DNA from: Andalucia godoyi And28 | Taxonomy: Eukaryota > Protista > Jakobida | NCBI GenBank assembly: GCA_009859145.1 | Contig: VRVR01000021.1 | Span: 1 to 6,274 of the forward strand | Direction of reading: 5' to 3' | Length of the DNA: 6,274 nt | In this document: positions 1-6,274 of the stretch, piece after piece | How positions within the stretch are numbered: the first letter of the stretch is position 1 | Layout of the letters: each line of letters begins with the position of its first letter | Made by a program: the position numbers and the translations under genes | The notes under the pieces: model-generated | Seen by the model: the letters and a program-made list of their open reading frames with translations, nothing else | What the model was told of the DNA's origin: nothing | Database searches by the model: none

Positions 1-1
1 C

Positions 2-299
2 GTCGCATCGTTACTGCGATCCGCGGGTCGACCGAGGTGCCCAGTGCCAAGACGCGCAGGAAGGTGTCGAAGTGCGGTGCTTCGAGGCTGCCAGCGGTTT
101 TCGAGACTGCTGCTTTGCCGCGGACACAAGCCGAGCATCGTTCCGCCGCTGCTGCTGAAGCCGAGGGCGATCTGTGCACTCTGTACTTGACGATGCGCAG
201 CTCGCGGTAGCAGTATGCAGTAAACAAGATGTATGCACGATTGGAGATTCCACGATTCCGATTCACACGCACCGAGCGGAGACCCACTCGCTCCTTTCC
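2..299 (-). other. possible coding segment or gene remnant running off the left edge, product unknown
   Basis: Stop-free minus frame 299->2 (...RAYILFTAYCYRELRIVKY...APHFDTFLRVLALGTSVDPRIAVTMR) with visibly G/C-rich third positions. There is no ATG before position 7, and the other minus frames are also largely open, so the true frame is uncertain. Confidence 0.25.
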
Positions 300-569
300 T
301 CATCAGTCGCTTGTCATAAAAGCCAGACAGCAGAGATGGTGGGTTGCCTCATGTGTTTGCCAGCAATGAGCACACAGAAGGCCATGGACCGTTGGCGAGC
401 ACCTTCACGACTACTGTGTAAATGTCGTAAGCACAGTACCTCTGATGATGGATCGGCAATGCTCAGCGTGCTGCATTCATAAAAAACAGCTCACCCTAAG
501 AAAGCATTCTTCCCGCGAAATAAACGACTGTAGTCGGGAATTAGGTAATTAATATTTTACGTATAACTC

Positions 570-1028
570 CTAAACGGCGTCGTCCCCAAGAGAATTTCTT
601 TTGCCAGATTGCTCGCCGTCCCCGACTCTACCAGTCCCCAGCATTACCTCAGAAAAAGTGCTGTGGACCATTTTCCGTATTTGTACTAACCAAAATAACA
701 CGGAGATAAACACTTCTACGTACTGCAAAACGCTGCGGGACAAATGTTTCCAATAGACGGAAGCGTGCCCAATCACTGAATAAATCAGAGTTTTTGGTTC
801 CGAAGGCTGTGGATTTTCCACAGACGTTACAGCAGCATCTGGAACGGACGAAACTTCGTCGGCAGTCACCCGGTCTGTTTTCGTCGCTGGATCGAGTTCA
901 AAGTGGGTCGGTTCCGTGGAGCACCCACTCCGCTCAAAAATACCGTCTGCTATTTCCGCAGAGCCGTCGATAGACGCACAACTCCGACAAGGAGCTCGGT
1001 TGTTGTCTGGCGAACCACATTCAATCAT
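570..1028 (-). CDS. hypothetical protein (152 aa), possibly the C-terminal part of a longer interrupted ORF; one hydrophobic segment near the C-terminus
   Basis: True ATG at 1028-1026 and TAG at 572-570, followed by an AT-rich tract (480-569) that could be a 3' UTR. An acidic/Pro/Ser-rich middle precedes VLQYVEVFISVLFWLVQI-RK. No family recognised. Confidence 0.35.
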   Translation of the reverse strand: MIECGSPDNNRAPCRSCASIDGSAEIADGIFERSGCSTEPTHFELDPATKTDRVTADEVSSVPDAAVTSVENPQPSEPKTLIYSVIGHASVYWKHLSRSVLQYVEVFISVLFWLVQIRKMVHSTFSEVMLGTGRVGDGEQSGKRNSLGDDAV

Positions 1029-1469
1029 TCGAAGTCAAAAGAAGACCCCTTCGTTCACGGACAAGGAATCATGGCTCCCGATTGCGTCGACGTGTGGTTT
1101 CAAAAAGCACAGCTGCGGAAACCAGGGACTCCATGCAGCTGGCATCACTTGAACGTAGCAACCAGATTTGGAGTGAACTGCTTCTACAGTACGGGAGTCT
1201 GTCGGGGGTTGCTGTTTTTTCCTGCTTGGGCGTACGGGGTCCGAGGACTACTGTCGTGCTGGTGCGAATTGCAGACCAGCTCGTCTCTGTCCTGTCATCC
1301 GCTCTCATGCTATGTTGAGTGAACTTCCGCAAGAACCTCACACAGCGATTGGTCTCCGCGCGCTCAAGCTGCAAGAGCTGTGGAAATCTTCAAAAGTTGC
1401 AACTGTGCTCGTTCCGCCTTCTCTTGAAATTCGGGTGGAATCACCGTCTTGGCATCACGTTCGGTCACG

Positions 1470-3377
1470 ATGTCCATTGAACGTCAGAACTTGGGCAAGG
1501 ATTCCAAGGGACGCGTGAGCTCCGTGAATGGGTCGATTGGCGGCGCTGCGGAGTCATTCGAGCAAGAAGAGTATGCTGTCTTTTGGGACATTGAGAACTG
1601 TCCCGTGCCCAAAGCGGTGTCGGCATATCAAGCAGCACAGAGCGTTCGACGAATGTTGAACGAATCCGGATGCAGAAAGGAGTTATCGTTTCGTTGTTAT
1701 GCAAACATCAGCTCGGTTCCGGTTCCTGTGCAAGAGGGGCTGAGCCTTGCCAACGTGGAGATTGTGCATGTTGTGGACAAGAAACCTGGAGCTGCGGACC
1801 GGGCGATCTTTCTGGCTTTGGATCGATTCGAGCGGAGTTCTCGCGACGGTCAGGCTCCTGCAAAGATCGTGCTCATCACCGGGGATGTGGATTTCATTGG
1901 GAAAGTGCACGACCTAGTGCACCAAGCTGGTCATCATGTGACCGTGGTTGTGAACAAGGTCGCAAAACACGAACTCCGAAATGCTGCCTCGAGATGCGTT
2001 ACGTGGTCGGATGTGCTAAGTGCGGCGTCTTCATCTTCTGTCACTGCCACTGCCACTGCCACTTCCACTGCATCCAAGAGAAACGGCGTGCAGGTGCCTG
2101 AGCATCCATCCCGAGCTGCGATTGCATCTTCTTCTGCAGCAAATACTGTCAAATCTTCGAAGCCGCAGCATGCACCACAATCGACGACTCACCTTGTTCT
2201 GAAGGGCGGGCCGTCTGTTGCACCTGTGGTAGTTGTTGGATGCAGCGATTGCGGCCGAACATTCAACTCGGATGTGGCAAGACGACAACACTTGTCTGCG
2301 ACGAATCACAAGTGCAGCTGTCCGTCTTGTCCGAAGACGTTCGCCAACGTTCACAGCCTGGAAACTCACCAAGAAAGCACAGGTCACACGTTTGAAGCGT
2401 ACTCCCGGGCGGCTGTATCTCATTCGTCGACCCGAAAGCACCGGAAGGCTAAAGGGGGGGAGTTTGCTTGCATGGAATGTGATCGAGTGTTTGCTTCGCC
2501 ACAGGCCCTGAATCAGCATCAAACGGCAACAGGGCATTGCAACGGTGATGACGACGAGGTTGACGGTGCCCATGAACCTCTCATTCCATGTCCTCAGTGC
2601 AACCGTGCGTTCCACAGTGTCAATGCTGTGCATCAACACCAAGACGACGCGAATCATTTGTTTGAATGCGAGGTTTGCTCCTCGCATTTCTTCACTTCCA
2701 ATGATTTGCACCGTCATCAAGCAACGTTCGACCATCTTCAAACCTGCCCTGGTTGTTCAAAGGCTTTCGAGACAATCGCCAAGCTGGAAGATCATATTGC
2801 GCGGGTTGGTCATTTCTACAAGTGCACGAGGTGTCAAGCACCTTATGCATCCAAGAGAGCGTTCGAGGCGCATACCCGGACCTGCTCGCATGTCGATCAA
2901 TCTTTGCAGCCTGTTCGGTGCGGCGAGTGTCGTTCCGTATTCCCGTCGATGGAATCGTTTGTCCGTCACAAGCGGCTGTCAATGTGTAAGCCTGCTGTGT
3001 CGGAACCAAGCAGCCAGCAGAGCACGCAAGGGACACAAGGCACACCTCAGATGGGTGCGCCAGAATTTAGTAGGATGCAATCCTTGAGCACAAATGCTCG
3101 AGTGTCGTCTTCGTCGTCCAGTAGTCCATCCGCAGGCGACGCCCGCGCCAGTGTTGACAGAGCACCTTCATCCGGTTCGTCTTCGGGATCGACGCAAATG
3201 CGATTTCTGCAAGGGATTCTTGGTGGCATGCTGTCTCCACTCGTGTCATTGGTGCAGTCCCAAGCGTCGCCAACACGACCCAAGGCTTGCAGTGAATGTG
3301 GCGCATCGTTTTACCTGGATTCTGAGCTTCAGGACCATCTTCTCGCCCACCGAGTCCAAAACGGATATGATTCTTGA
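1470..3377 (+). CDS. NYN-domain (limkain-b1/MARF1-type PIN-fold) putative ribonuclease fused to a nine-finger C2H2/C2HC zinc-finger region, 635 aa
   Basis: Uninterrupted ORF. The track start at 1449 is TTG; the first ATG is 1470 and the stop is TGA 3375-3377. It carries the NYN motifs AVFWDIENC, KPGAAD and IVLITGDVDF, then nine C-x2-C-x12-H units. Confidence 0.92.
   Translation: MSIERQNLGKDSKGRVSSVNGSIGGAAESFEQEEYAVFWDIENCPVPKAVSAYQAAQSVRRMLNESGCRKELSFRCYANISSVPVPVQEGLSLANVEIVHVVDKKPGAADRAIFLALDRFERSSRDGQAPAKIVLITGDVDFIGKVHDLVHQAGHHVTVVVNKVAKHELRNAASRCVTWSDVLSAASSSSVTATATATSTASKRNGVQVPEHPSRAAIASSSAANTVKSSKPQHAPQSTTHLVLKGGPSVAPVVVVGCSDCGRTFNSDVARRQHLSATNHKCSCPSCPKTFANVHSLETHQESTGHTFEAYSRAAVSHSSTRKHRKAKGGEFACMECDRVFASPQALNQHQTATGHCNGDDDEVDGAHEPLIPCPQCNRAFHSVNAVHQHQDDANHLFECEVCSSHFFTSNDLHRHQATFDHLQTCPGCSKAFETIAKLEDHIARVGHFYKCTRCQAPYASKRAFEAHTRTCSHVDQSLQPVRCGECRSVFPSMESFVRHKRLSMCKPAVSEPSSQQSTQGTQGTPQMGAPEFSRMQSLSTNARVSSSSSSSPSAGDARASVDRAPSSGSSSGSTQMRFLQGILGGMLSPLVSLVQSQASPTRPKACSECGASFYLDSELQDHLLAHRVQNGYDS
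1572..2018 (+). other. NYN ribonuclease domain (limkain-b1 N-terminal type)
   Basis: Acidic active-site residues at codons 1587 (FWD), 1797 (AAD), 1884 and 1890 (GDVD), with the alternating beta/alpha pattern of the PIN fold. Confidence 0.9.
2043..2072 (+). repeat. coding hexamer microsatellite (ACTGCC)3 plus two degenerate copies, encoding TATATATSTA
   Basis: actgcc actgcc actgcc acttcc actgca, in the Ser/Thr/Ala linker after the NYN domain. Confidence 0.85.
2241..2987 (+). other. array of eight zinc fingers (F1-F8)
   Basis: Numbered from the 642-aa track protein: C265-H287, C291-H313, C341-H363, C381-H403, C407-H429, C433-H455, C459-H481 and C491-C513. All have C-x2-C-x12-H. F1-F7 have H-x5-H (F7 also has a Cys at H+4); F8 is H-x5-C. 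Confidence 0.9.
3288..3350 (+). other. isolated C-terminal classical C2H2 finger (F9)
   Basis: CSECGASFYLDSELQDHLLAH = C-x2-C-x12-H-x3-H, separated from F8 by about 100 aa of Ser/Gln-rich sequence. Confidence 0.85.
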
Positions 3378-3496
3378 CGCGAGTGAACAATCCGGAAACC
3401 GTTATCTGGCAGCTTTATGGACTCGAAGAAAAGATCGGCCGGTCAACCACATGCAGTTGCCCAAGCGATTTGTGGTGGGAAAGAAACTTGAATGAG

Positions 3497-3825
3497 TTAT
3501 CCAACCGGTCGGTACGTCTCTCGCGCACGTCGCTTGACAAGTATCCAGATGACGCCCGCGATCGCAGCAAGTCCCACGATGCCTCCAATGGCACCCCCAC
3601 AATAGCGCCAGTGTGCTTGTCGTCGTCGTCGTCGTGATGGCTGGGACCGGGAGAGGGCTTCCGCTCTTGACAGGGAAGACTTGAATCTGGCACTGGACAT
3701 GAGAGAAATCCTGCGCGCCCCGAAGTATCCTGCAATTTCAAAACCCACTGGTTCGCGACTTCCGAGAACACGTACAGTGCAGCAGTCTCTCGCATTCTCT
3801 TGGCCGTTACCCAGTAGTCTGCCAT
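3497..3825 (-). pseudogene. frameshifted remnant of a single-pass (type I-like) membrane protein
   Basis: Adding one base to the C5 run at 3594-3598 joins the ORFs 3415..3825 and 3497..3748 into ...KPSPGPSHHDDDDDKHTGAIVGGAIGGIVGLAAIAGVIWILVKRRARETYRPVG*: a Pro/Asp stalk, a Gly-rich TM helix, a basic stop-transfer motif and TAA at 3499-3497. The 5' end is undetermined. Confidence 0.65.
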
Positions 3826-4233
3826 GTTCTCAGTCTGATGCTCCCTTGTTCGTTCCGCGCAAACCTCGTGCTATCATTCTGCAAATGGTCGCACCGTCGT
3901 TCACGGAGATCCGACAGCTTCTCTTCTTGACCGACACGACGCAATTCCACTCTGTTCAGCAAGCGGCAAACACGCCCTAGGTGTCGGGTGCAAGGAAGTG
4001 TGAGGCTGTGTGAGCCGACGGTAGTCGATTGGTCGAGGGGAAGCCCCTGCATTTTTTCCTAAACACGACTGGAGGGTAGGAACTTCACTTCGAGTGGTAT
4101 TATTTGTTGTATTGTTCCGTTCTGCGCAAGAACCCCTTTTTCACCTCCACAAGTTTCGTGGCTTTTATTTTTTGGGAGCGAATCTGCAAAATGTGTGTCA
4201 TACTTAAAGGAAGAAACCGTAAACGAATCCACC

Positions 4234-4790
4234 ATGCAAGCACTTCAAAGCTGGGAGAAGCGATCCTTGGTGAAAAGCCAGTGTCGACAGTGACGTCGCA
4301 ACCTCGGACAGACCCGTCTGGTGCAAAGATGCACGCACTTTCGTGGCAAGGTGTTGAACAGATTGGGTACACCGAGCATCCGAAGCCTGCTATTACGGAA
4401 GCGCAGGACATTGTCCTGAGAGTCACGGCGACTACCGTATGTGGTTCTGACCTGCATCTCTGTGCAGGAGACATGCCTGCAATGCACAAGGAAGACATCA
4501 TCGGCCATGAATTCATGGGAATTTTGGAGAGTGTCGGTCCGAAAGTTGCGACTTTGAAGGTGAGAGATCGAGTTGTGTGCAGTTTTGACATTGCATGCGG
4601 CACTTGTGATTACTGCAAACGAGAGGAGTACACAGGATGTGATATGACCAATCCCAGCAAGCTCATGGAGTACATGTATGGACATTGAACCGCGGGTATG
4701 CACGGATACAGCGGTATGACCGGTGGATATCCCGGCGGTCAGGCAGAGTATGTACGGGTTCCTTTCACAGATGTGAACTGCTTGAATATA
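4234..4790 (+). pseudogene. Zn-dependent MDR-family alcohol dehydrogenase (glutathione-dependent formaldehyde dehydrogenase-like), disrupted; N-terminal GroES-like domain only
   Basis: Motifs TTVCGSDLH, GHEFMG, structural Zn site CGTCDYC-x7-C and [14 protein letters not shown]. In-frame TGA at 4686-4688, with homology continuing past it to codon 4788-4790. The likely original start ccaccATG at 4234 needs +1 A at 4247-4249 (MQALQKLGEAILGEKP). The Rossmann domain is absent because the gene is cut at 4791. Confidence 0.9.
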
Positions 4791-4808
4791 CACTACTGAA
4801 TAAAAATG
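4791..4808 (+). repeat. CACTA terminal inverted repeat (one copy; true length unknown)
   Basis: CACTACTGAATAAAAATG: CACTAC followed by an A-rich run, as is typical of CACTA TIRs. The partner TIR is outside the window. Confidence 0.75.
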
Positions 4809-4827
4809 AACCCAAACCCTTTTTTTC

Positions 4828-4907
4828 GAGATGCCCTTGTGACGTCTTTCTGATCTTGTGACATTTATCCTCTTGCACAGATAACCGAAGCATCACAAGC
4901 GCGTCTC
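4828..4907. repeat. subterminal repeats of the CACTA element
   Basis: CTTGTGAC direct copies at 4836-4843 and 4855-4862, and an inverted copy ATCACAAG at 4892-4899. This extends to a 15-bp inverted repeat, 4828-4842 (gagatgcccttgtga) versus 4893-4907 (reverse complement gagacgcgcttgtga), 13/15 identical. Confidence 0.75.
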
Positions 4908-4938
4908 TTTAATAATCATAGAAAGTCCTTTGAAAACA

Positions 4939-4944
4939 TTTATT
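4939..4944 (-). terminator. candidate polyadenylation signal for the transposase transcript
   Basis: AATAAA on the minus strand, 36 nt past the transposase TAA, in an AT-rich tract with an adjacent ATTAAA (4944-4949). Confidence 0.4.
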
Positions 4945-4980
4945 TTAATTGTAAAAAAAAAAGTTGCCAATTTTGCAGTA

Positions 4981-6273
4981 TTATAACCCAACCCCTTCGA
5001 TAGAGGTCGGATGGCGGGACAGCTCCAGAACAAGGTGAGCTCGCCCGCGCATCATTTCTTGTAGAACGATATGTGCGCCGATGAGATGCAGTGGCACAAG
5101 CTCAGTTGCATTCGACTGGCTCCATCGCTTTCCAACATCAACAACCGCATATCCCGAGACGGCGTGAGTGGGTAAACGAAGAAAACCCTGTACTTGTGCA
5201 AAGGCCAGATGGACACCATTTGTAGGAGACGAGCGGCAAACAAACAATTTGAGAATTTTGCAATACATCTTCGGAGAGAACATGACGGACACCGTACTGT
5301 TGCAAAAGAGTTGTACGGGGCAACTGGTAGCAAAAGATGCAAGCTGCAACGGCCCCCAGTGATTGGCGCAGTATACTCTGTGAAAACATATTATATCTTG
5401 ACACGGCACTTCAATACGTCGTGCAAAATATGCCAAGTCCTCTTCGGTAGCAATATTGGAACGACCAAACTCTCTCACTGCTTTTTGATATAGAGGACCG
5501 TATTCAGGATCGAACATGGATCTCCACTTCATCACGGCTGCGGTGACGAGAGGTGTAGCACACTCAACAGTCATACCACTTTCACTGAATTGCACGTCTC
5601 CAGAATGCGTGTATTGCTTAGCATGAGGACGGAAAATGAATGTGTTCCTCGGCTGGGCAGTAACTCTGAACGATTCGAGATGCTCCCACACAGAAGTGTT
5701 ACCCAGCCAGCATTCCATCTCAGACAAAAACAGTCTATGATGCAGTCCGTCGGAGAGTTGAGAAAATGCCTGATTCGGAGCGGTTATCAAAGCGGACGAT
5801 TCTTTGATAAAGGCTTCGAGAGGGAATGTCCAGTGATGACACAGAGGTCCATGCCGCCTGGTAACCATCCCGACATGCAAGAGGGCGTGGAACGCGAATC
5901 GACACTCAGCTGCGCCGGCAAGCCTTTCGAATGCCTGACATGCCCTTGAAAAATGGTACTCCATTCTCACAATGTCCTCTTCTTGTAACGTCGTACACGA
6001 GGCCAGAAAGAATCCGATGCTAAAGTCCCGGAAGCACTGGTAGAACTCTGGATGGACCACCAAATCGTAAAACAGAAATGGGATGAGATAGATCAGAAAG
6101 TTCATATGATCCACCATTTTCCACTGCCTCCCTTTCGAGAACGACTTAACGACACTCATATGGCTCGGAAATCGTAGGCTGCTCAACCGCCTGTCAGCGA
6201 TCTTAATGTTTTCCGCTGTCAGCAGATTCCAGGATCGTGTCAAGATCGTAGCGGTCGAGGAAGTGGTTCGATT
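4981..6273 (-). CDS. En/Spm (CACTA) transposase, C-terminal part (5'-partial)
   Basis: The frame is open from the window edge (NRTTSSTATIL precedes the TTG the track used) to TAA at 4983-4981. Motifs RRLSSLRFP...WKMVDHMNFLIY, H-x3-H (FHALLH, codons 5889 and 5877) and GPL...WTFPLE (Glu at 5817-5815) match the H(3-4)H...E end of the CMC-superfamily DDE core. Confidence 0.85.
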   Translation of the reverse strand, partial: NRTTSSTATILTRSWNLLTAENIKIADRRLSSLRFPSHMSVVKSFSKGRQWKMVDHMNFLIYLIPFLFYDLVVHPEFYQCFRDFSIGFFLASCTTLQEEDIVRMEYHFSRACQAFERLAGAAECRFAFHALLHVGMVTRRHGPLCHHWTFPLEAFIKESSALITAPNQAFSQLSDGLHHRLFLSEMECWLGNTSVWEHLESFRVTAQPRNTFIFRPHAKQYTHSGDVQFSESGMTVECATPLVTAAVMKWRSMFDPEYGPLYQKAVREFGRSNIATEEDLAYFARRIEVPCQDIICFHRVYCANHWGPLQLASFATSCPVQLFCNSTVSVMFSPKMYCKILKLFVCRSSPTNGVHLAFAQVQGFLRLPTHAVSGYAVVDVGKRWSQSNATELVPLHLIGAHIVLQEMMRGRAHLVLELSRHPTSIEGVGL

Positions 6274-6274
6274 C

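Follow-up and report, generated by a model that had tools for sequence, protein, structure and literature searches.

A MARF1-type NYN domain joined to nine zinc fingers in Andalucia godoyi: a candidate single-chain RNA-targeting endoribonuclease

The window analysed here, i.e., the whole stretch of 6,274 nucleotides, lies on contig VRVR01000021.1 of the free-living jakobid protist Andalucia godoyi and carries, 1.5 kb from the scaffold end, a gene for an NYN domain followed by a linker and nine zinc fingers. The features of this gene are as follows.

1470..3377, + strand: complete, intron-less NYN-linker-finger ORF of 635 aa (ATG at 1470, TGA at 3375-3377)
1566..2030, + strand: NYN domain of the MARF1 / LK-nuclease type, aa 33-187 (Pfam, PDB match, AF2, Foldseek)
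1587..1598, + strand: β1 motif D40-I-E-N43, equivalent to D178 and N181 of mouse MARF1
1704..1706, + strand: N79 (AAC), aligned with mouse MARF1 D215; the only residue that deviates from the catalytic set of MARF1
1797..1802, + strand: D110-R111; D110 corresponds to mouse D246 and human D426, R111 to the position of human D427
1878..1892, + strand: β4 motif T137-G-D139-V-D141; T137 corresponds to S270, D139 to D272 and human D452
2022..2240, + strand: linker, aa 185-257, 73 aa, rich in Ser, Ala, Thr and Val, predicted disordered
2241..2309, + strand: finger 1, C2H2, C-x2-C-x12-H-x5-H, aa 258-280
2319..2387, + strand: finger 2, C2H2 with H-x5-H, aa 284-306; zf-C2H2_jaz at 23.6 bits when scored singly, above cutoff
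2469..2537, + strand: finger 3, C2H2 with H-x5-H, aa 334-356; zf-C2H2_jaz at 23.2 bits when scored singly, above cutoff
2589..2891, + strand: fingers 4-7, aa 374-396, 400-422, 426-448 and 452-474, a tight tandem block
2919..2987, + strand: finger 8, CCHC variant with H-x5-C, aa 484-506; weak BCL-11A-like CCHC match
2988..3287, + strand: spacer, aa 507-606, 100 aa, Ser-rich, low-complexity, disordered
3288..3350, + strand: finger 9, classical C2H2 with H-x3-H, C-terminal, aa 607-627

The gene is intact: the ORF is real, with 635 codons uninterrupted by a stop, and an in-frame stop stands 14 codons 5' of the ATG. A protein identical over all 635 aa is present in the protein collection (P0001). 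The gene neighbourhood is degraded and subtelomeric, and comprises an ADH pseudogene that is truncated and carries a TGA nonsense codon, long ORFs that could not be classified, repeats, N gaps left by the assembly and a 99% identical inverted repeat. According to the A. godoyi genome paper, the subtelomeres are rich in transposon and viral-like sequence. Telomere repeats were not found at the scaffold start, and there were no Rfam matches. The 420-aa ORF at 4981-6243 (- strand) and ORFs further along the contig were considered as parts of CACTA/KDZ-type transposases, a label that was dropped with no Pfam (E <= 10) and no PDB match; they count only as repetitive and unclassified. A variant genetic code was also considered, because the ADH fragment contains TGA in frame, and set aside: the NYN gene uses TGA as its own stop, an ADH homologue has Arg at the place of the in-frame TGA, which fits a CGA-to-TGA change, and homology to ADH ceases about 100 nt further on.

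The N-terminal domain was matched by the Pfam NYN model (PF01936) over aa 36-177 with an E value of 2.3e-13 and a score of 51.3 bits, the cutoff being 24.2. In a sequence search of the PDB, the MARF1 NYN crystal chains were recovered at 31-32% identity (human 6fdl, E 7e-16; mouse, E 2.3e-15). The MARF1/LK-nuclease subtype of NYN has been designated 'NYN.1' (PMC5499597). The AF2 model, a prediction from a shallow alignment of only three sequences, shows alternating β/α elements in the NYN region with a pLDDT of about 80-93. In Foldseek this model matched 5yaa and 6fdl with TM 0.81-0.86 and rmsd 2.3-2.7 A, the best superposition being that on 5yaa_C (TM 0.86, rmsd 2.3 A, 151 columns), and it also matched 2qip (VPA0982). 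The nuclease domain is thus, as judged by sequence and by predicted fold, of the MARF1 subtype. No RRM or LOTUS/OST-HTH domain was matched by Pfam at E <= 1 in the 635-aa protein, and neither RNase_Zc3h12a (PF11977) nor CCCH was matched in it. Because RRM, LOTUS and OST-HTH are lacking, some other module must do the targeting, as the first-pass annotation had assumed when it set the protein apart from the RRM and LOTUS arrangement of MARF1.

The active site was compared with two experimental descriptions of MARF1 and with an alignment of 111 NYN relatives. In mouse MARF1 the catalytic residues are D178, D215, D246 and D272, and the D215A mutation abolished in vitro cleavage (PMC6217404). In human MARF1 the acidic-patch residues are D358, D426, D427 and D452, and the equivalent of D215 is not among them (PMC6294520). 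The mouse set falls on D40, N79, D110 and D139 of the Andalucia protein and the human set on D40, D110, R111 and D139, i.e., three of four Asp in either case. The β1 Asp and Asn (D40, N43), the α3 Asp (D110) and the β4 Ser/Thr-x-Asp (T137, D139) are all present, whereas the β2 Asp (mouse D215) is replaced by Asn79. D141 corresponds to the second Asp of the canonical NYN 'GDxDF' motif, a position occupied by Asn in MARF1. Asp occupies the columns of D40, D110, D139 and D141 in 110, 107, 109 and 92 of the 111 relatives, respectively, and Asn that of N43 in 108. Position 111 is variable (R in 32, K in 23, D in 18). At position 79 the relatives have Asp in 77 cases, Asn in 25 and other residues in 9; P0002 and the majority of the closest relatives, which are of the rotifer type, have Asn. 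In some rotifer paralogues (P0031, P0069, P0084) a loss at active-site positions is plainly visible.

The domain had been identified from the letters alone as an NYN domain and set beside that of MARF1, and the Pfam, 6fdl and 5yaa matches agree with this. The motif quoted in that connection (AADRxIxLxLDRFER...DFxGK..DLxHQAG) is present and conserved in the nearest relatives, and the two codons singled out for mutation do encode Asp (1587, GAC, D40; 1884, GAT, D139). The further claim that the domain is catalytically intact with four catalytic Asp held in part: four Asp (D40, D110, D139, D141) do stand at near-invariant positions, but agreement with the MARF1 sites established by experiment is three out of four, N79 (mouse set) and R111 (human set) being the exceptions.

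The array comprises seven C2H2 fingers with H-x5-H spacing, one CCHC finger and, past the 100-aa spacer, one classical C2H2 finger, and each of the nine was modelled as a ββα unit by AF2. In the shuffled-protein control, the pattern search returned 0.05 fingers on average and two at most. The fingers are 22-48% identical to one another. Fingers 4-7 recur with a period of 26 residues, so that only three residues separate the last His from the next first Cys. The H-x5-[H/C] spacing was found in eight of the nine fingers, H-x3-H in finger 9 only and the TGEKP linker in none (0/9). Extended His spacing (C-x2-C-x12-H-x5/6-H) typifies the JAZ / zf-met (U1-like) class. The whole protein scored 43.2 bits with zf-C2H2_jaz (PF12171; cutoff 22.6) and 24.9 bits with zf-met (PF12874; cutoff 21.2), although when the fingers were scored singly only fingers 2 and 3 exceeded the zf-C2H2_jaz cutoff. 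Known JAZ/ZFa proteins have long linkers between their fingers, unlike the 3-residue ones in Andalucia. The ZNF451 finger models gave weak matches below their cutoffs. The combination that marks a Krüppel-type DNA-reading array, H-x3-H with TGEKP-like 7-residue linkers, is not seen. Foldseek matches to DNA-binding arrays were discarded, as with an rmsd of 11-27 A and TM < 0.4 they reflect only repeated ββα units. Judging from these motifs and scores, the assignment of the fingers to the kind filed by Pfam as RNA-binding is supported.

The linker between the NYN domain and finger 1 consists of Ser, Thr and Ala to 48% and of Val to 14%, and its DNA includes a (CTGCCA)n microsatellite at 2038-2071. 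The proposal that had been made from the open reading frames, an NYN domain joined by a Ser/Thr/Ala linker of about 75 aa to nine fingers, is borne out by the ORF, by Pfam and by the model: the linker measures 73 aa and all nine fingers were located, with the eighth being of the CCHC kind and the ninth of the H-x3-H type and set apart from the others.

Relatives were obtained by an exhaustive NYN-only protein search and number roughly 850, and architecture was counted in the 150 closest NYN representatives. A search with the full-length protein was dominated by generic C2H2 candidates and gave two relatives only, and what an alignment-based search brought up was mostly short fragments of MARF1 and plant NYN proteins, uninformative on architecture. 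At least two fingers C-terminal to the NYN domain were present in 42 of the 150 representatives, and these were concentrated near the Andalucia sequence (24 of the 50 nearest versus 18 of the 100 others; Fisher p = 2e-4). The same holds for tandem H-x5-H fingers recurring about every 26 residues (20 of 50 versus 12 of 100; p = 2e-4). The finger-bearing relatives group together on an NJ tree computed without support values. An N-terminal CCCH pair was found in 30 of 151 representatives, and CCCH fingers, which are of the RNA-binding type, occur together with C2H2 fingers in 15 relatives. Proteins with NYN and C2H2 fingers were recovered from Eutrema, Brassica rapa, bdelloid rotifers, Filamoeba and many uncultured eukaryotes; zf-C2H2_jaz reaches up to 80 bits in relatives and zf-met an E value of 3e-14 in Eutrema. 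In transcriptome-derived protein sets, a Filamoeba homologue with fingers and a Stenamoeba NYN relative were found, the latter having no fingers that could be found. The collinearity between P0002 and the Andalucia protein begins with the NYN domain and extends up to and including finger 6 (41% identity, E 3e-92). This collinearity, together with the low mutual identity of the fingers, shows the array to be of old origin and conserved since.

As compared at the sequence level, the NYN-plus-finger architecture is not unique to Andalucia and belongs to a widespread eukaryotic family, as had been cautioned earlier with reference to plant proteins and as the Brassicaceae, rotifer and Filamoeba sequences now confirm. 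An old clade spans several eukaryotic supergroups with (CCCH)2-NYN-(C2H2)n as its common layout. The Andalucia NYN domain is closest to this clade and is followed by tandem H-x5-H fingers of about 26-residue period, but the N-terminal CCCH pair is lacking. A CCCH motif, sought as a missed upstream exon, was found neither in the protein nor in the six frames of the window. The Andalucia copy is, on these alignments, a variant without the CCCH pair and with the longest finger array seen. The combination of NYN with many fingers does recur, with at most six fingers in any of the 150 closest representatives, and an array of nine was not seen elsewhere. No functional study of an NYN plus C2H2 protein was found in the literature.

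Based on these results, the Andalucia protein is somewhat better explained than not (probability about 0.55) as a single-chain Mg2+/Mn2+-dependent endoribonuclease tethered to an RNA-binding, JAZ/zf-met-like finger array. By homology, the N-terminal NYN domain would cut single-stranded RNA as those of MARF1 and DNE1 do, and the flexible linker of about 73 aa would tether it to eight closely spaced JAZ/zf-met-like fingers and one distal classical finger. Finger type and the domain company of the family suggest that the array could recognise RNA that is structured or double-stranded, or else a partner associated with RNA, and could thereby direct the nuclease to particular transcripts. The anti-transposon, antiviral or mRNA-decay roles considered in the first-pass annotation drew no support from these results. 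In the opposite reading, which is rather unlikely, the NYN domain would be an RNA- or protein-binding scaffold whose catalysis was lost or weakened by Asn79, and the protein would act as an adaptor or zinc-finger RNA-binding regulator without cutting. The loss of cleavage in mouse D215A, the fact that Asp-to-Asn at a conserved Asp is a catalytic-dead allele of DNE1 and the inactive offshoots within the family (P0031, P0069, P0084) argue for such a scaffold. However, D40, N43, D110, T137, D139 and D141 are all retained in Andalucia, unlike in the degenerate paralogues, and the listed carriers among the 25 of 111 relatives with Asn79 are otherwise intact except P0069 and P0084. Since the carriers mostly have an intact site, Asn79 looks like a tolerated variant and not like decay. 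Moreover, Asn is still able to ligate a metal ion or water, and the human MARF1 study leaves the D215 equivalent out of its four acidic-patch residues.

DNA binding is the classical function of poly-C2H2 arrays. The Andalucia array might likewise recognise DNA, in which case the protein would be a transcription factor or would bind subtelomeres or repeats, with the NYN domain acting on nascent RNA, R-loops or ssDNA or serving for interaction only. Sequence and Foldseek matches that include the ZFP568, CTCF and PRDM9 arrays, and the classical H-x3-H of finger 9, point in this direction, as does AT5G61190, a gene listed among cold-regulated transcription factors and presumably the Arabidopsis equivalent of the plant proteins with NYN and fingers. 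Nevertheless, the spacing in the other eight fingers, the absence of TGEKP linkers, the poor superposition of the matched arrays, the JAZ and zf-met models as the best specific Pfam finger models, and an RNase and CCCH fingers as the domain partners in the family make a DNA-reading factor unlikely. The surroundings of the gene raise yet another explanation, a dispensable or non-functional subtelomeric relic, i.e., a decaying or mobile-element-linked copy that is intact only by recency and has no host role. The proximity of the scaffold end, the ADH pseudogene, unclassifiable ORFs, gaps and inverted repeat nearby, the transposon- and viral-like richness of the subtelomeres and the absence of the exact gene from the gene-position index are consistent with it. 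Yet the reading frame is open throughout with all family-conserved motifs kept, collinearity with an independent relative (P0002) extends over the NYN domain and six fingers, and neither terminal repeats bracketing the gene nor a transposase-like Pfam domain near it was found, so that a relic appears highly improbable.

NYN and PIN endoribonucleases have little cutting specificity of their own, and the known targeting modules are LOTUS/RRM in MARF1, OST-HTH in DNE1, KH in N4BP1 and KHNYN, and a single CCCH in Regnase-1. In the present clade, which spans several supergroups, the nuclease is of the MARF1 type and is coupled to C2H2 arrays of multiple fingers, to which a CCCH pair is often added. 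For the Andalucia protein we infer both activity and RNA targeting, and the finding is not unique to the Andalucia genome. If active, such proteins would represent a new targeting solution for eukaryotic RNA decay and a rare case of tandem C2H2 fingers recognising RNA in cis with an enzyme, a matter relevant to RNA biology as well as to protein engineering. The Andalucia protein, being small and intron-less with the longest array, would be a convenient model. A far-reaching and quite doubtful extension is that the clade represents natural sequence- or structure-programmable RNases whose fingers read RNA modularly and which are used against selfish or foreign RNA in repeat-rich subtelomeres. 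Each finger in the 26-residue-period array would then contact a few nucleotides or a helical step, and array length and finger identity would set the choice of target, with the nine fingers of Andalucia as the extreme.

Among known systems, Regnase-1/ZC3H12A combines a PIN-like RNase with one CCCH finger. ZAP, with four CCCH fingers, acts with the KHNYN nuclease on a separate chain (10.1101/2021.12.22.473955). Both are PIN/NYN endoribonucleases guided by RNA-binding zinc fingers, as proposed for Andalucia, and a natural zinc-finger RNase, as the first-pass annotation had termed it, is therefore not a new concept. Regnase-1 differs in its nuclease family (PF11977, unmatched in Andalucia), in having CCCH instead of C2H2 and in having one finger instead of nine, and ZAP-KHNYN in placing CCCH fingers and nuclease on two chains, whereas the Andalucia protein is a single chain. 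ZNF451 joins 11 C2H2 fingers to a PIN_11 domain (PMC5499597) and so resembles Andalucia in linking many C2H2 fingers to a domain of the PIN-like superfamily; however, PIN_11 is a different, minimised PIN-like family in C-terminal position, and the role of ZNF451 is that of a nuclear SUMO/transcription cofactor.

MARF1 (limkain b1) and DNE1 share with Andalucia the NYN subtype and the D-x-x-N, AAD and S/T-x-D motifs. The NYN domain of MARF1 cleaves ssRNA with Mg2+ or Mn2+ and requires an RNA-binding module (PMC6217404, PMC6294520), and in DNE1, the plant counterpart of MARF1, mRNA repression depends on a catalytic Asp (10.1101/2021.10.01.462782). By analogy, the Andalucia protein may follow the same logic, in which an unspecific ssRNA-cutting NYN domain relies on attached RNA-binding modules. 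However, it has a C2H2 array in place of RRM and LOTUS/OST-HTH, Asn79 for D215, Arg111 for human D427 and Asp141 where MARF1 has Asn, and by these sequence differences it is not a MARF1 orthologue. The Brassicaceae proteins (Eutrema EUTSA_v10003670mg, Brassica rapa LOC103860573), which we take to be the AT5G61190 group annotated as 'putative endonuclease or glycosyl hydrolase', likewise have an N-terminal NYN domain followed by U1-like/JAZ-type C2H2 fingers. In contrast to Andalucia, their NYN domain falls in the plant group on the NJ tree and their fingers, two or three in number, lie scattered across about 450 residues instead of in tandem; they may represent an independent fusion, as may the finger fusion in Cyanophora. 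The (CCCH)2-NYN-(C2H2)n proteins, known from Rotaria sordida and R. magnacalcarata ('unnamed protein product' / 'Zinc finger protein'), Filamoeba and metagenomic eukaryotes (P0002, P0003, P0018 and others), form the NYN clade closest to Andalucia, with 43-60% identity in the domain, and have a similar disordered linker and then tandem H-x5-H fingers of about 26-residue period, whereas the Andalucia protein has nine fingers, no CCCH pair and a distal classical finger past a 100-aa spacer.

The 635-aa protein encoded 1.5 kb from the scaffold end of Andalucia godoyi belongs to a widespread, uncharacterised clade that combines NYN domains with zinc fingers, and is an extreme variant within it; domain identities and order, conservation pattern and family distribution were all directly observed. 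The position follows from the identity of bases 1-6274 of VRVR01000021.1 (361,630 bp, GCA_009859145.1) with the window; a telomere repeat was looked for at the scaffold start and none was found, and the left flank (1-1469) contained no recognisable gene. VRVR00000000 is the nuclear genome of this jakobid flagellate, which is compact (~20 Mb) with mostly intron-less genes, and transposon and viral-like sequences are abundant in its subtelomeric scaffolds (PMC7050145). The first-pass annotation had described a real feature well, apart from its catalytic intactness, and its ORF coordinates, linker and count of nine fingers were all borne out. The ATG is preceded, at a distance of 14 codons, by an in-frame stop, and an identical 635-aa protein is already present in the public protein collection. 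The features of the window and of L003, a longer stretch of the same contig running past the window end, are as follows.

Features of the window and the adjoining contig
1470-3377, plus strand: NYN-finger gene, a single ORF of 635 aa (ATG 1470, TGA 3375-3377)
aa 258-280, 284-306, 334-356, 374-396, 400-422, 426-448, 452-474, 484-506 and 607-627 of its product: nine zinc fingers
3497-3748, minus strand: ORF of 83 aa with a Gly/Ala/Ile-rich hydrophobic C-terminal stretch, then KRRARE
4326 to ~4790, plus strand: N-terminal fragment of a bacterial-type Zn-dependent alcohol/formaldehyde dehydrogenase (Pfam ADH_N)
4981-6243, minus strand: long ORF (420 aa within the window) extending over an N gap as far as L003 6687, no detectable family
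L003 6635-6820 and 9507-9692, just past the window: 186-nt inverted repeat, 99% identical, adjoining N runs
L003 10502-12094, plus strand: ANKRD13_C-like protein gene (E 1.3e-13)
L003 12100-14670, minus strand: ORF of 856 aa rich in poly-Q and poly-A, no family match

The Pfam search confirmed the NYN domain (aa 36-177, 51.3 bits where the cutoff is 24.2, E 2.3e-13) as well as a JAZ-type finger match. The best sequence matches among solved structures were the NYN domains of MARF1 from human and mouse (6fdl, E 7e-16; 5yaa, E 2.3e-15), and MARF1 NYN crystal structures also ranked top in the Foldseek search (TM 0.81-0.86, rmsd 2.3-2.7 A). The AlphaFold2 model used for that search was built from an input alignment of three sequences only; in it, aa 33-187 form a confident alternating β/α core (pLDDT ~80-93), and disorder is predicted for aa 1-31, 188-254, 308-329, 357-370 and 509-601. 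Cleavage of ssRNA by mouse MARF1 needs each of D178, D215, D246 and D272, and N181 and S270 are conserved too (PMC6217404); the residues named in human MARF1 are D358, D426, D427 and D452 (PMC6294520). In the alignment the four mouse Asp correspond to D40, N79, D110 and D139, N181 and S270 to N43 and T137, and human D427 to R111. The two codons singled out earlier as catalytic (1587, D40; 1884, D139) were correct and four Asp do occupy canonical NYN acidic positions, but the claim of an intact site was overstated, one residue (Asn79 for mouse D215) departing from the experimentally defined MARF1 set while the rest of the site is retained.

Across 111 full-length NYN domains taken from the exhaustive NYN search, D40 (110), N43 (108), D110 (107), S/T137 (110) and D139 (109) were near-invariant. 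At position 141, 92 domains had Asp and 17, MARF1-like proteins among them, had Asn; position 111 was variable, so D427 is a peculiarity of MARF1. Position 79 was occupied by Asp in 77 domains, by Asn in 25 and by other residues in 9; Asn is shared by the metagenomic relative P0002 and the majority of the nearest relatives (P0004-P0006, P0008, P0009, P0011, P0012). Three relatives, P0031 (Rotaria magnacalcarata), P0069 and P0084, keep their fingers and have lost several active-site residues (e.g., the signature DDDHLSAE instead of DNDDRSDD), and pseudo-nuclease offshoots therefore exist in this family. Asn79 may be read as a tolerated clade variant rather than as decay, since the rest of the site is retained whereas clearly degenerate relatives exist.

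The linker (aa 185-257, 73 aa) is 48% Ser+Thr+Ala and 14% Val. Within its coding sequence lies a (CTGCCA)5.7 microsatellite (2038-2071) encoding the Thr-Ala run TATATAT, a likely site of length polymorphism. The nine fingers were modelled as separate ββα units, and shuffled versions of the protein contained on average 0.05 finger motifs. Fingers 1-7 share the spacing C-x2-C-x12-H-x5-H, finger 8 has the same spacing with a terminal Cys (CCHC), and finger 9 is of the classical H-x3-H type beyond a 100-aa Ser-rich spacer. Fingers 4-7 form a tight block of 26-residue period, with identical spacing in fingers 1-2, only three residues separating the last His from the next first Cys, and no TGEKP-type linker occurs in the array. 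The Pfam JAZ model ("double-stranded RNA-binding") gave 43 bits on the whole protein, its cutoff being passed singly by fingers 2 and 3 while the remaining fingers scored as generic C2H2. Pairwise identity among the fingers is 22-48% and no DNA-level repeats underlie them, and the array is therefore old.

The exhaustive search returned 846 representatives at E <= 1e-3, of which 174 reached E <= 1e-10. At least two regex-defined C2H2 fingers were present in 42 of the 150 best relatives, nearly all C-terminal to the NYN domain, and 105 of 136 fingers (those of the 150 relatives plus the nine of the protein itself) had the H-x5 spacing. This architecture was found in 24 of the 50 nearest against 18 of the 100 other relatives (Fisher p = 2e-4), and the 24-29-residue tandem period was likewise concentrated among the nearest. 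A rough neighbour-joining tree, calculated with no support values, grouped the finger-bearing proteins together and apart from plant NYN and long MARF1-like groups. Named members are the bdelloid rotifers Rotaria sordida and R. magnacalcarata, Filamoeba sp. (Amoebozoa; from a transcriptome) and the Brassicaceae Eutrema and Brassica rapa; Pfam verified NYN with JAZ or zf-met fingers in several named relatives. In Cyanophora paradoxa (glaucophyte) the regex counted three fingers, but Pfam supports only the NYN domain and a sub-cutoff CCCH match. An N-terminal CCCH region (zf-CCCH_3, Nab2-type) was detected by Pfam in the rotifer proteins, the relative P0018 and Cyanophora. Of 151 representatives, 30 contained a CCCH motif and 15 of these had C2H2 fingers as well, and two CCCH fingers precede the NYN domain in P0009, P0052, P0018, P0005, P0124 and others; none was found in the protein or in any frame of the window. 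The closest relative is P0002, whose NYN domain is 60% identical; collinearity with it extends from that domain as far as finger 6 (41% identity, E 3e-92). The architecture recurs elsewhere, with at most six fingers in any relative seen against nine here. AT5G61190, presumably the counterpart of the Eutrema and Brassica proteins, appears in the literature in gene lists only, labelled "putative endonuclease or glycosyl hydrolase". The literature search turned up no NYN plus C2H2 protein that had been studied functionally. In the PIN-superfamily classification, MARF1 is grouped with the plant NYN proteins as "NYN.1" and C2H2 is mentioned for ZNF451 only, whose PIN-like domain is a different one (PMC5499597), and the OST-HTH paper notes "LK-nuclease" fusions to Zn-knuckles only (PMC2848206).

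To the right of the gene, the dehydrogenase fragment has an in-frame TGA (4686-4688) at an Arg position of its homologue P0185; homology spans ~155 residues, continuing ~35 codons past the TGA before AT-rich DNA, so it is a truncated pseudogene. Its nearest named eukaryotic match is Adineta vaga (58%), the others being mostly bacterial, and a 165-aa gene call (4191-4688) already exists. The 3497-3748 ORF has a transmembrane-like segment, which transmembrane models match only weakly and below threshold; this ORF is unlikely to be a gene. For the 4981-6243 ORF, at whose 3' side GC falls to 43-44%, no Pfam or PDB sequence match was obtained at permissive thresholds; a transposase-associated protein had been suspected, and no tool supported it. 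The ORFs flanking the inverted repeat share a near-identical peptide segment, and the repeat points to repetitive subtelomeric elements or assembly collapse. The first clearly genic neighbours are the ANKRD13_C-like gene and the poly-Q ORF. This repeat-rich neighbourhood is suggestive at most of an anti-transposon or antiviral role.

With a probability of roughly 0.55, the protein would be an active ssRNA endonuclease targeted to RNA by its finger array via a flexible linker. The NYN domain would cleave ssRNA in a metal-dependent manner, the fingers would bind RNA and hence provide targeting, and the disordered linker would allow the nuclease to reach RNA adjoining the bound site. This is suggested because MARF1 NYN activity depends on the RNA-binding LOTUS repeats of MARF1 (PMC6217404), and by DNE1, its plant counterpart, the finger type and the RNA-linked company of the domain, i.e., CCCH fingers. 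A pseudo-nuclease or adaptor, to which Asn79 and the degenerate relatives could point and from which the near-invariant residues retained point away, is unlikely. Somewhat less likely is a DNA- or chromatin-directed factor: the arrays of CTCF, ZFP568 and PRDM9 do match the model, at rmsd 11-27 A, matches that reflect only the repetition of ββα units, and the JAZ-type fingers are more consistent with RNA. A dispensable subtelomeric relic, which would suit the scaffold-end position beside a pseudogene, is improbable next to an uninterrupted ORF and its collinearity with P0002.

The plant NYN-finger proteins differ in that their NYN domain is of the plant type and their fingers are dispersed; they may represent an independent fusion. 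As for the known finger-guided PIN/NYN RNases, the protein described here is close to them in concept.
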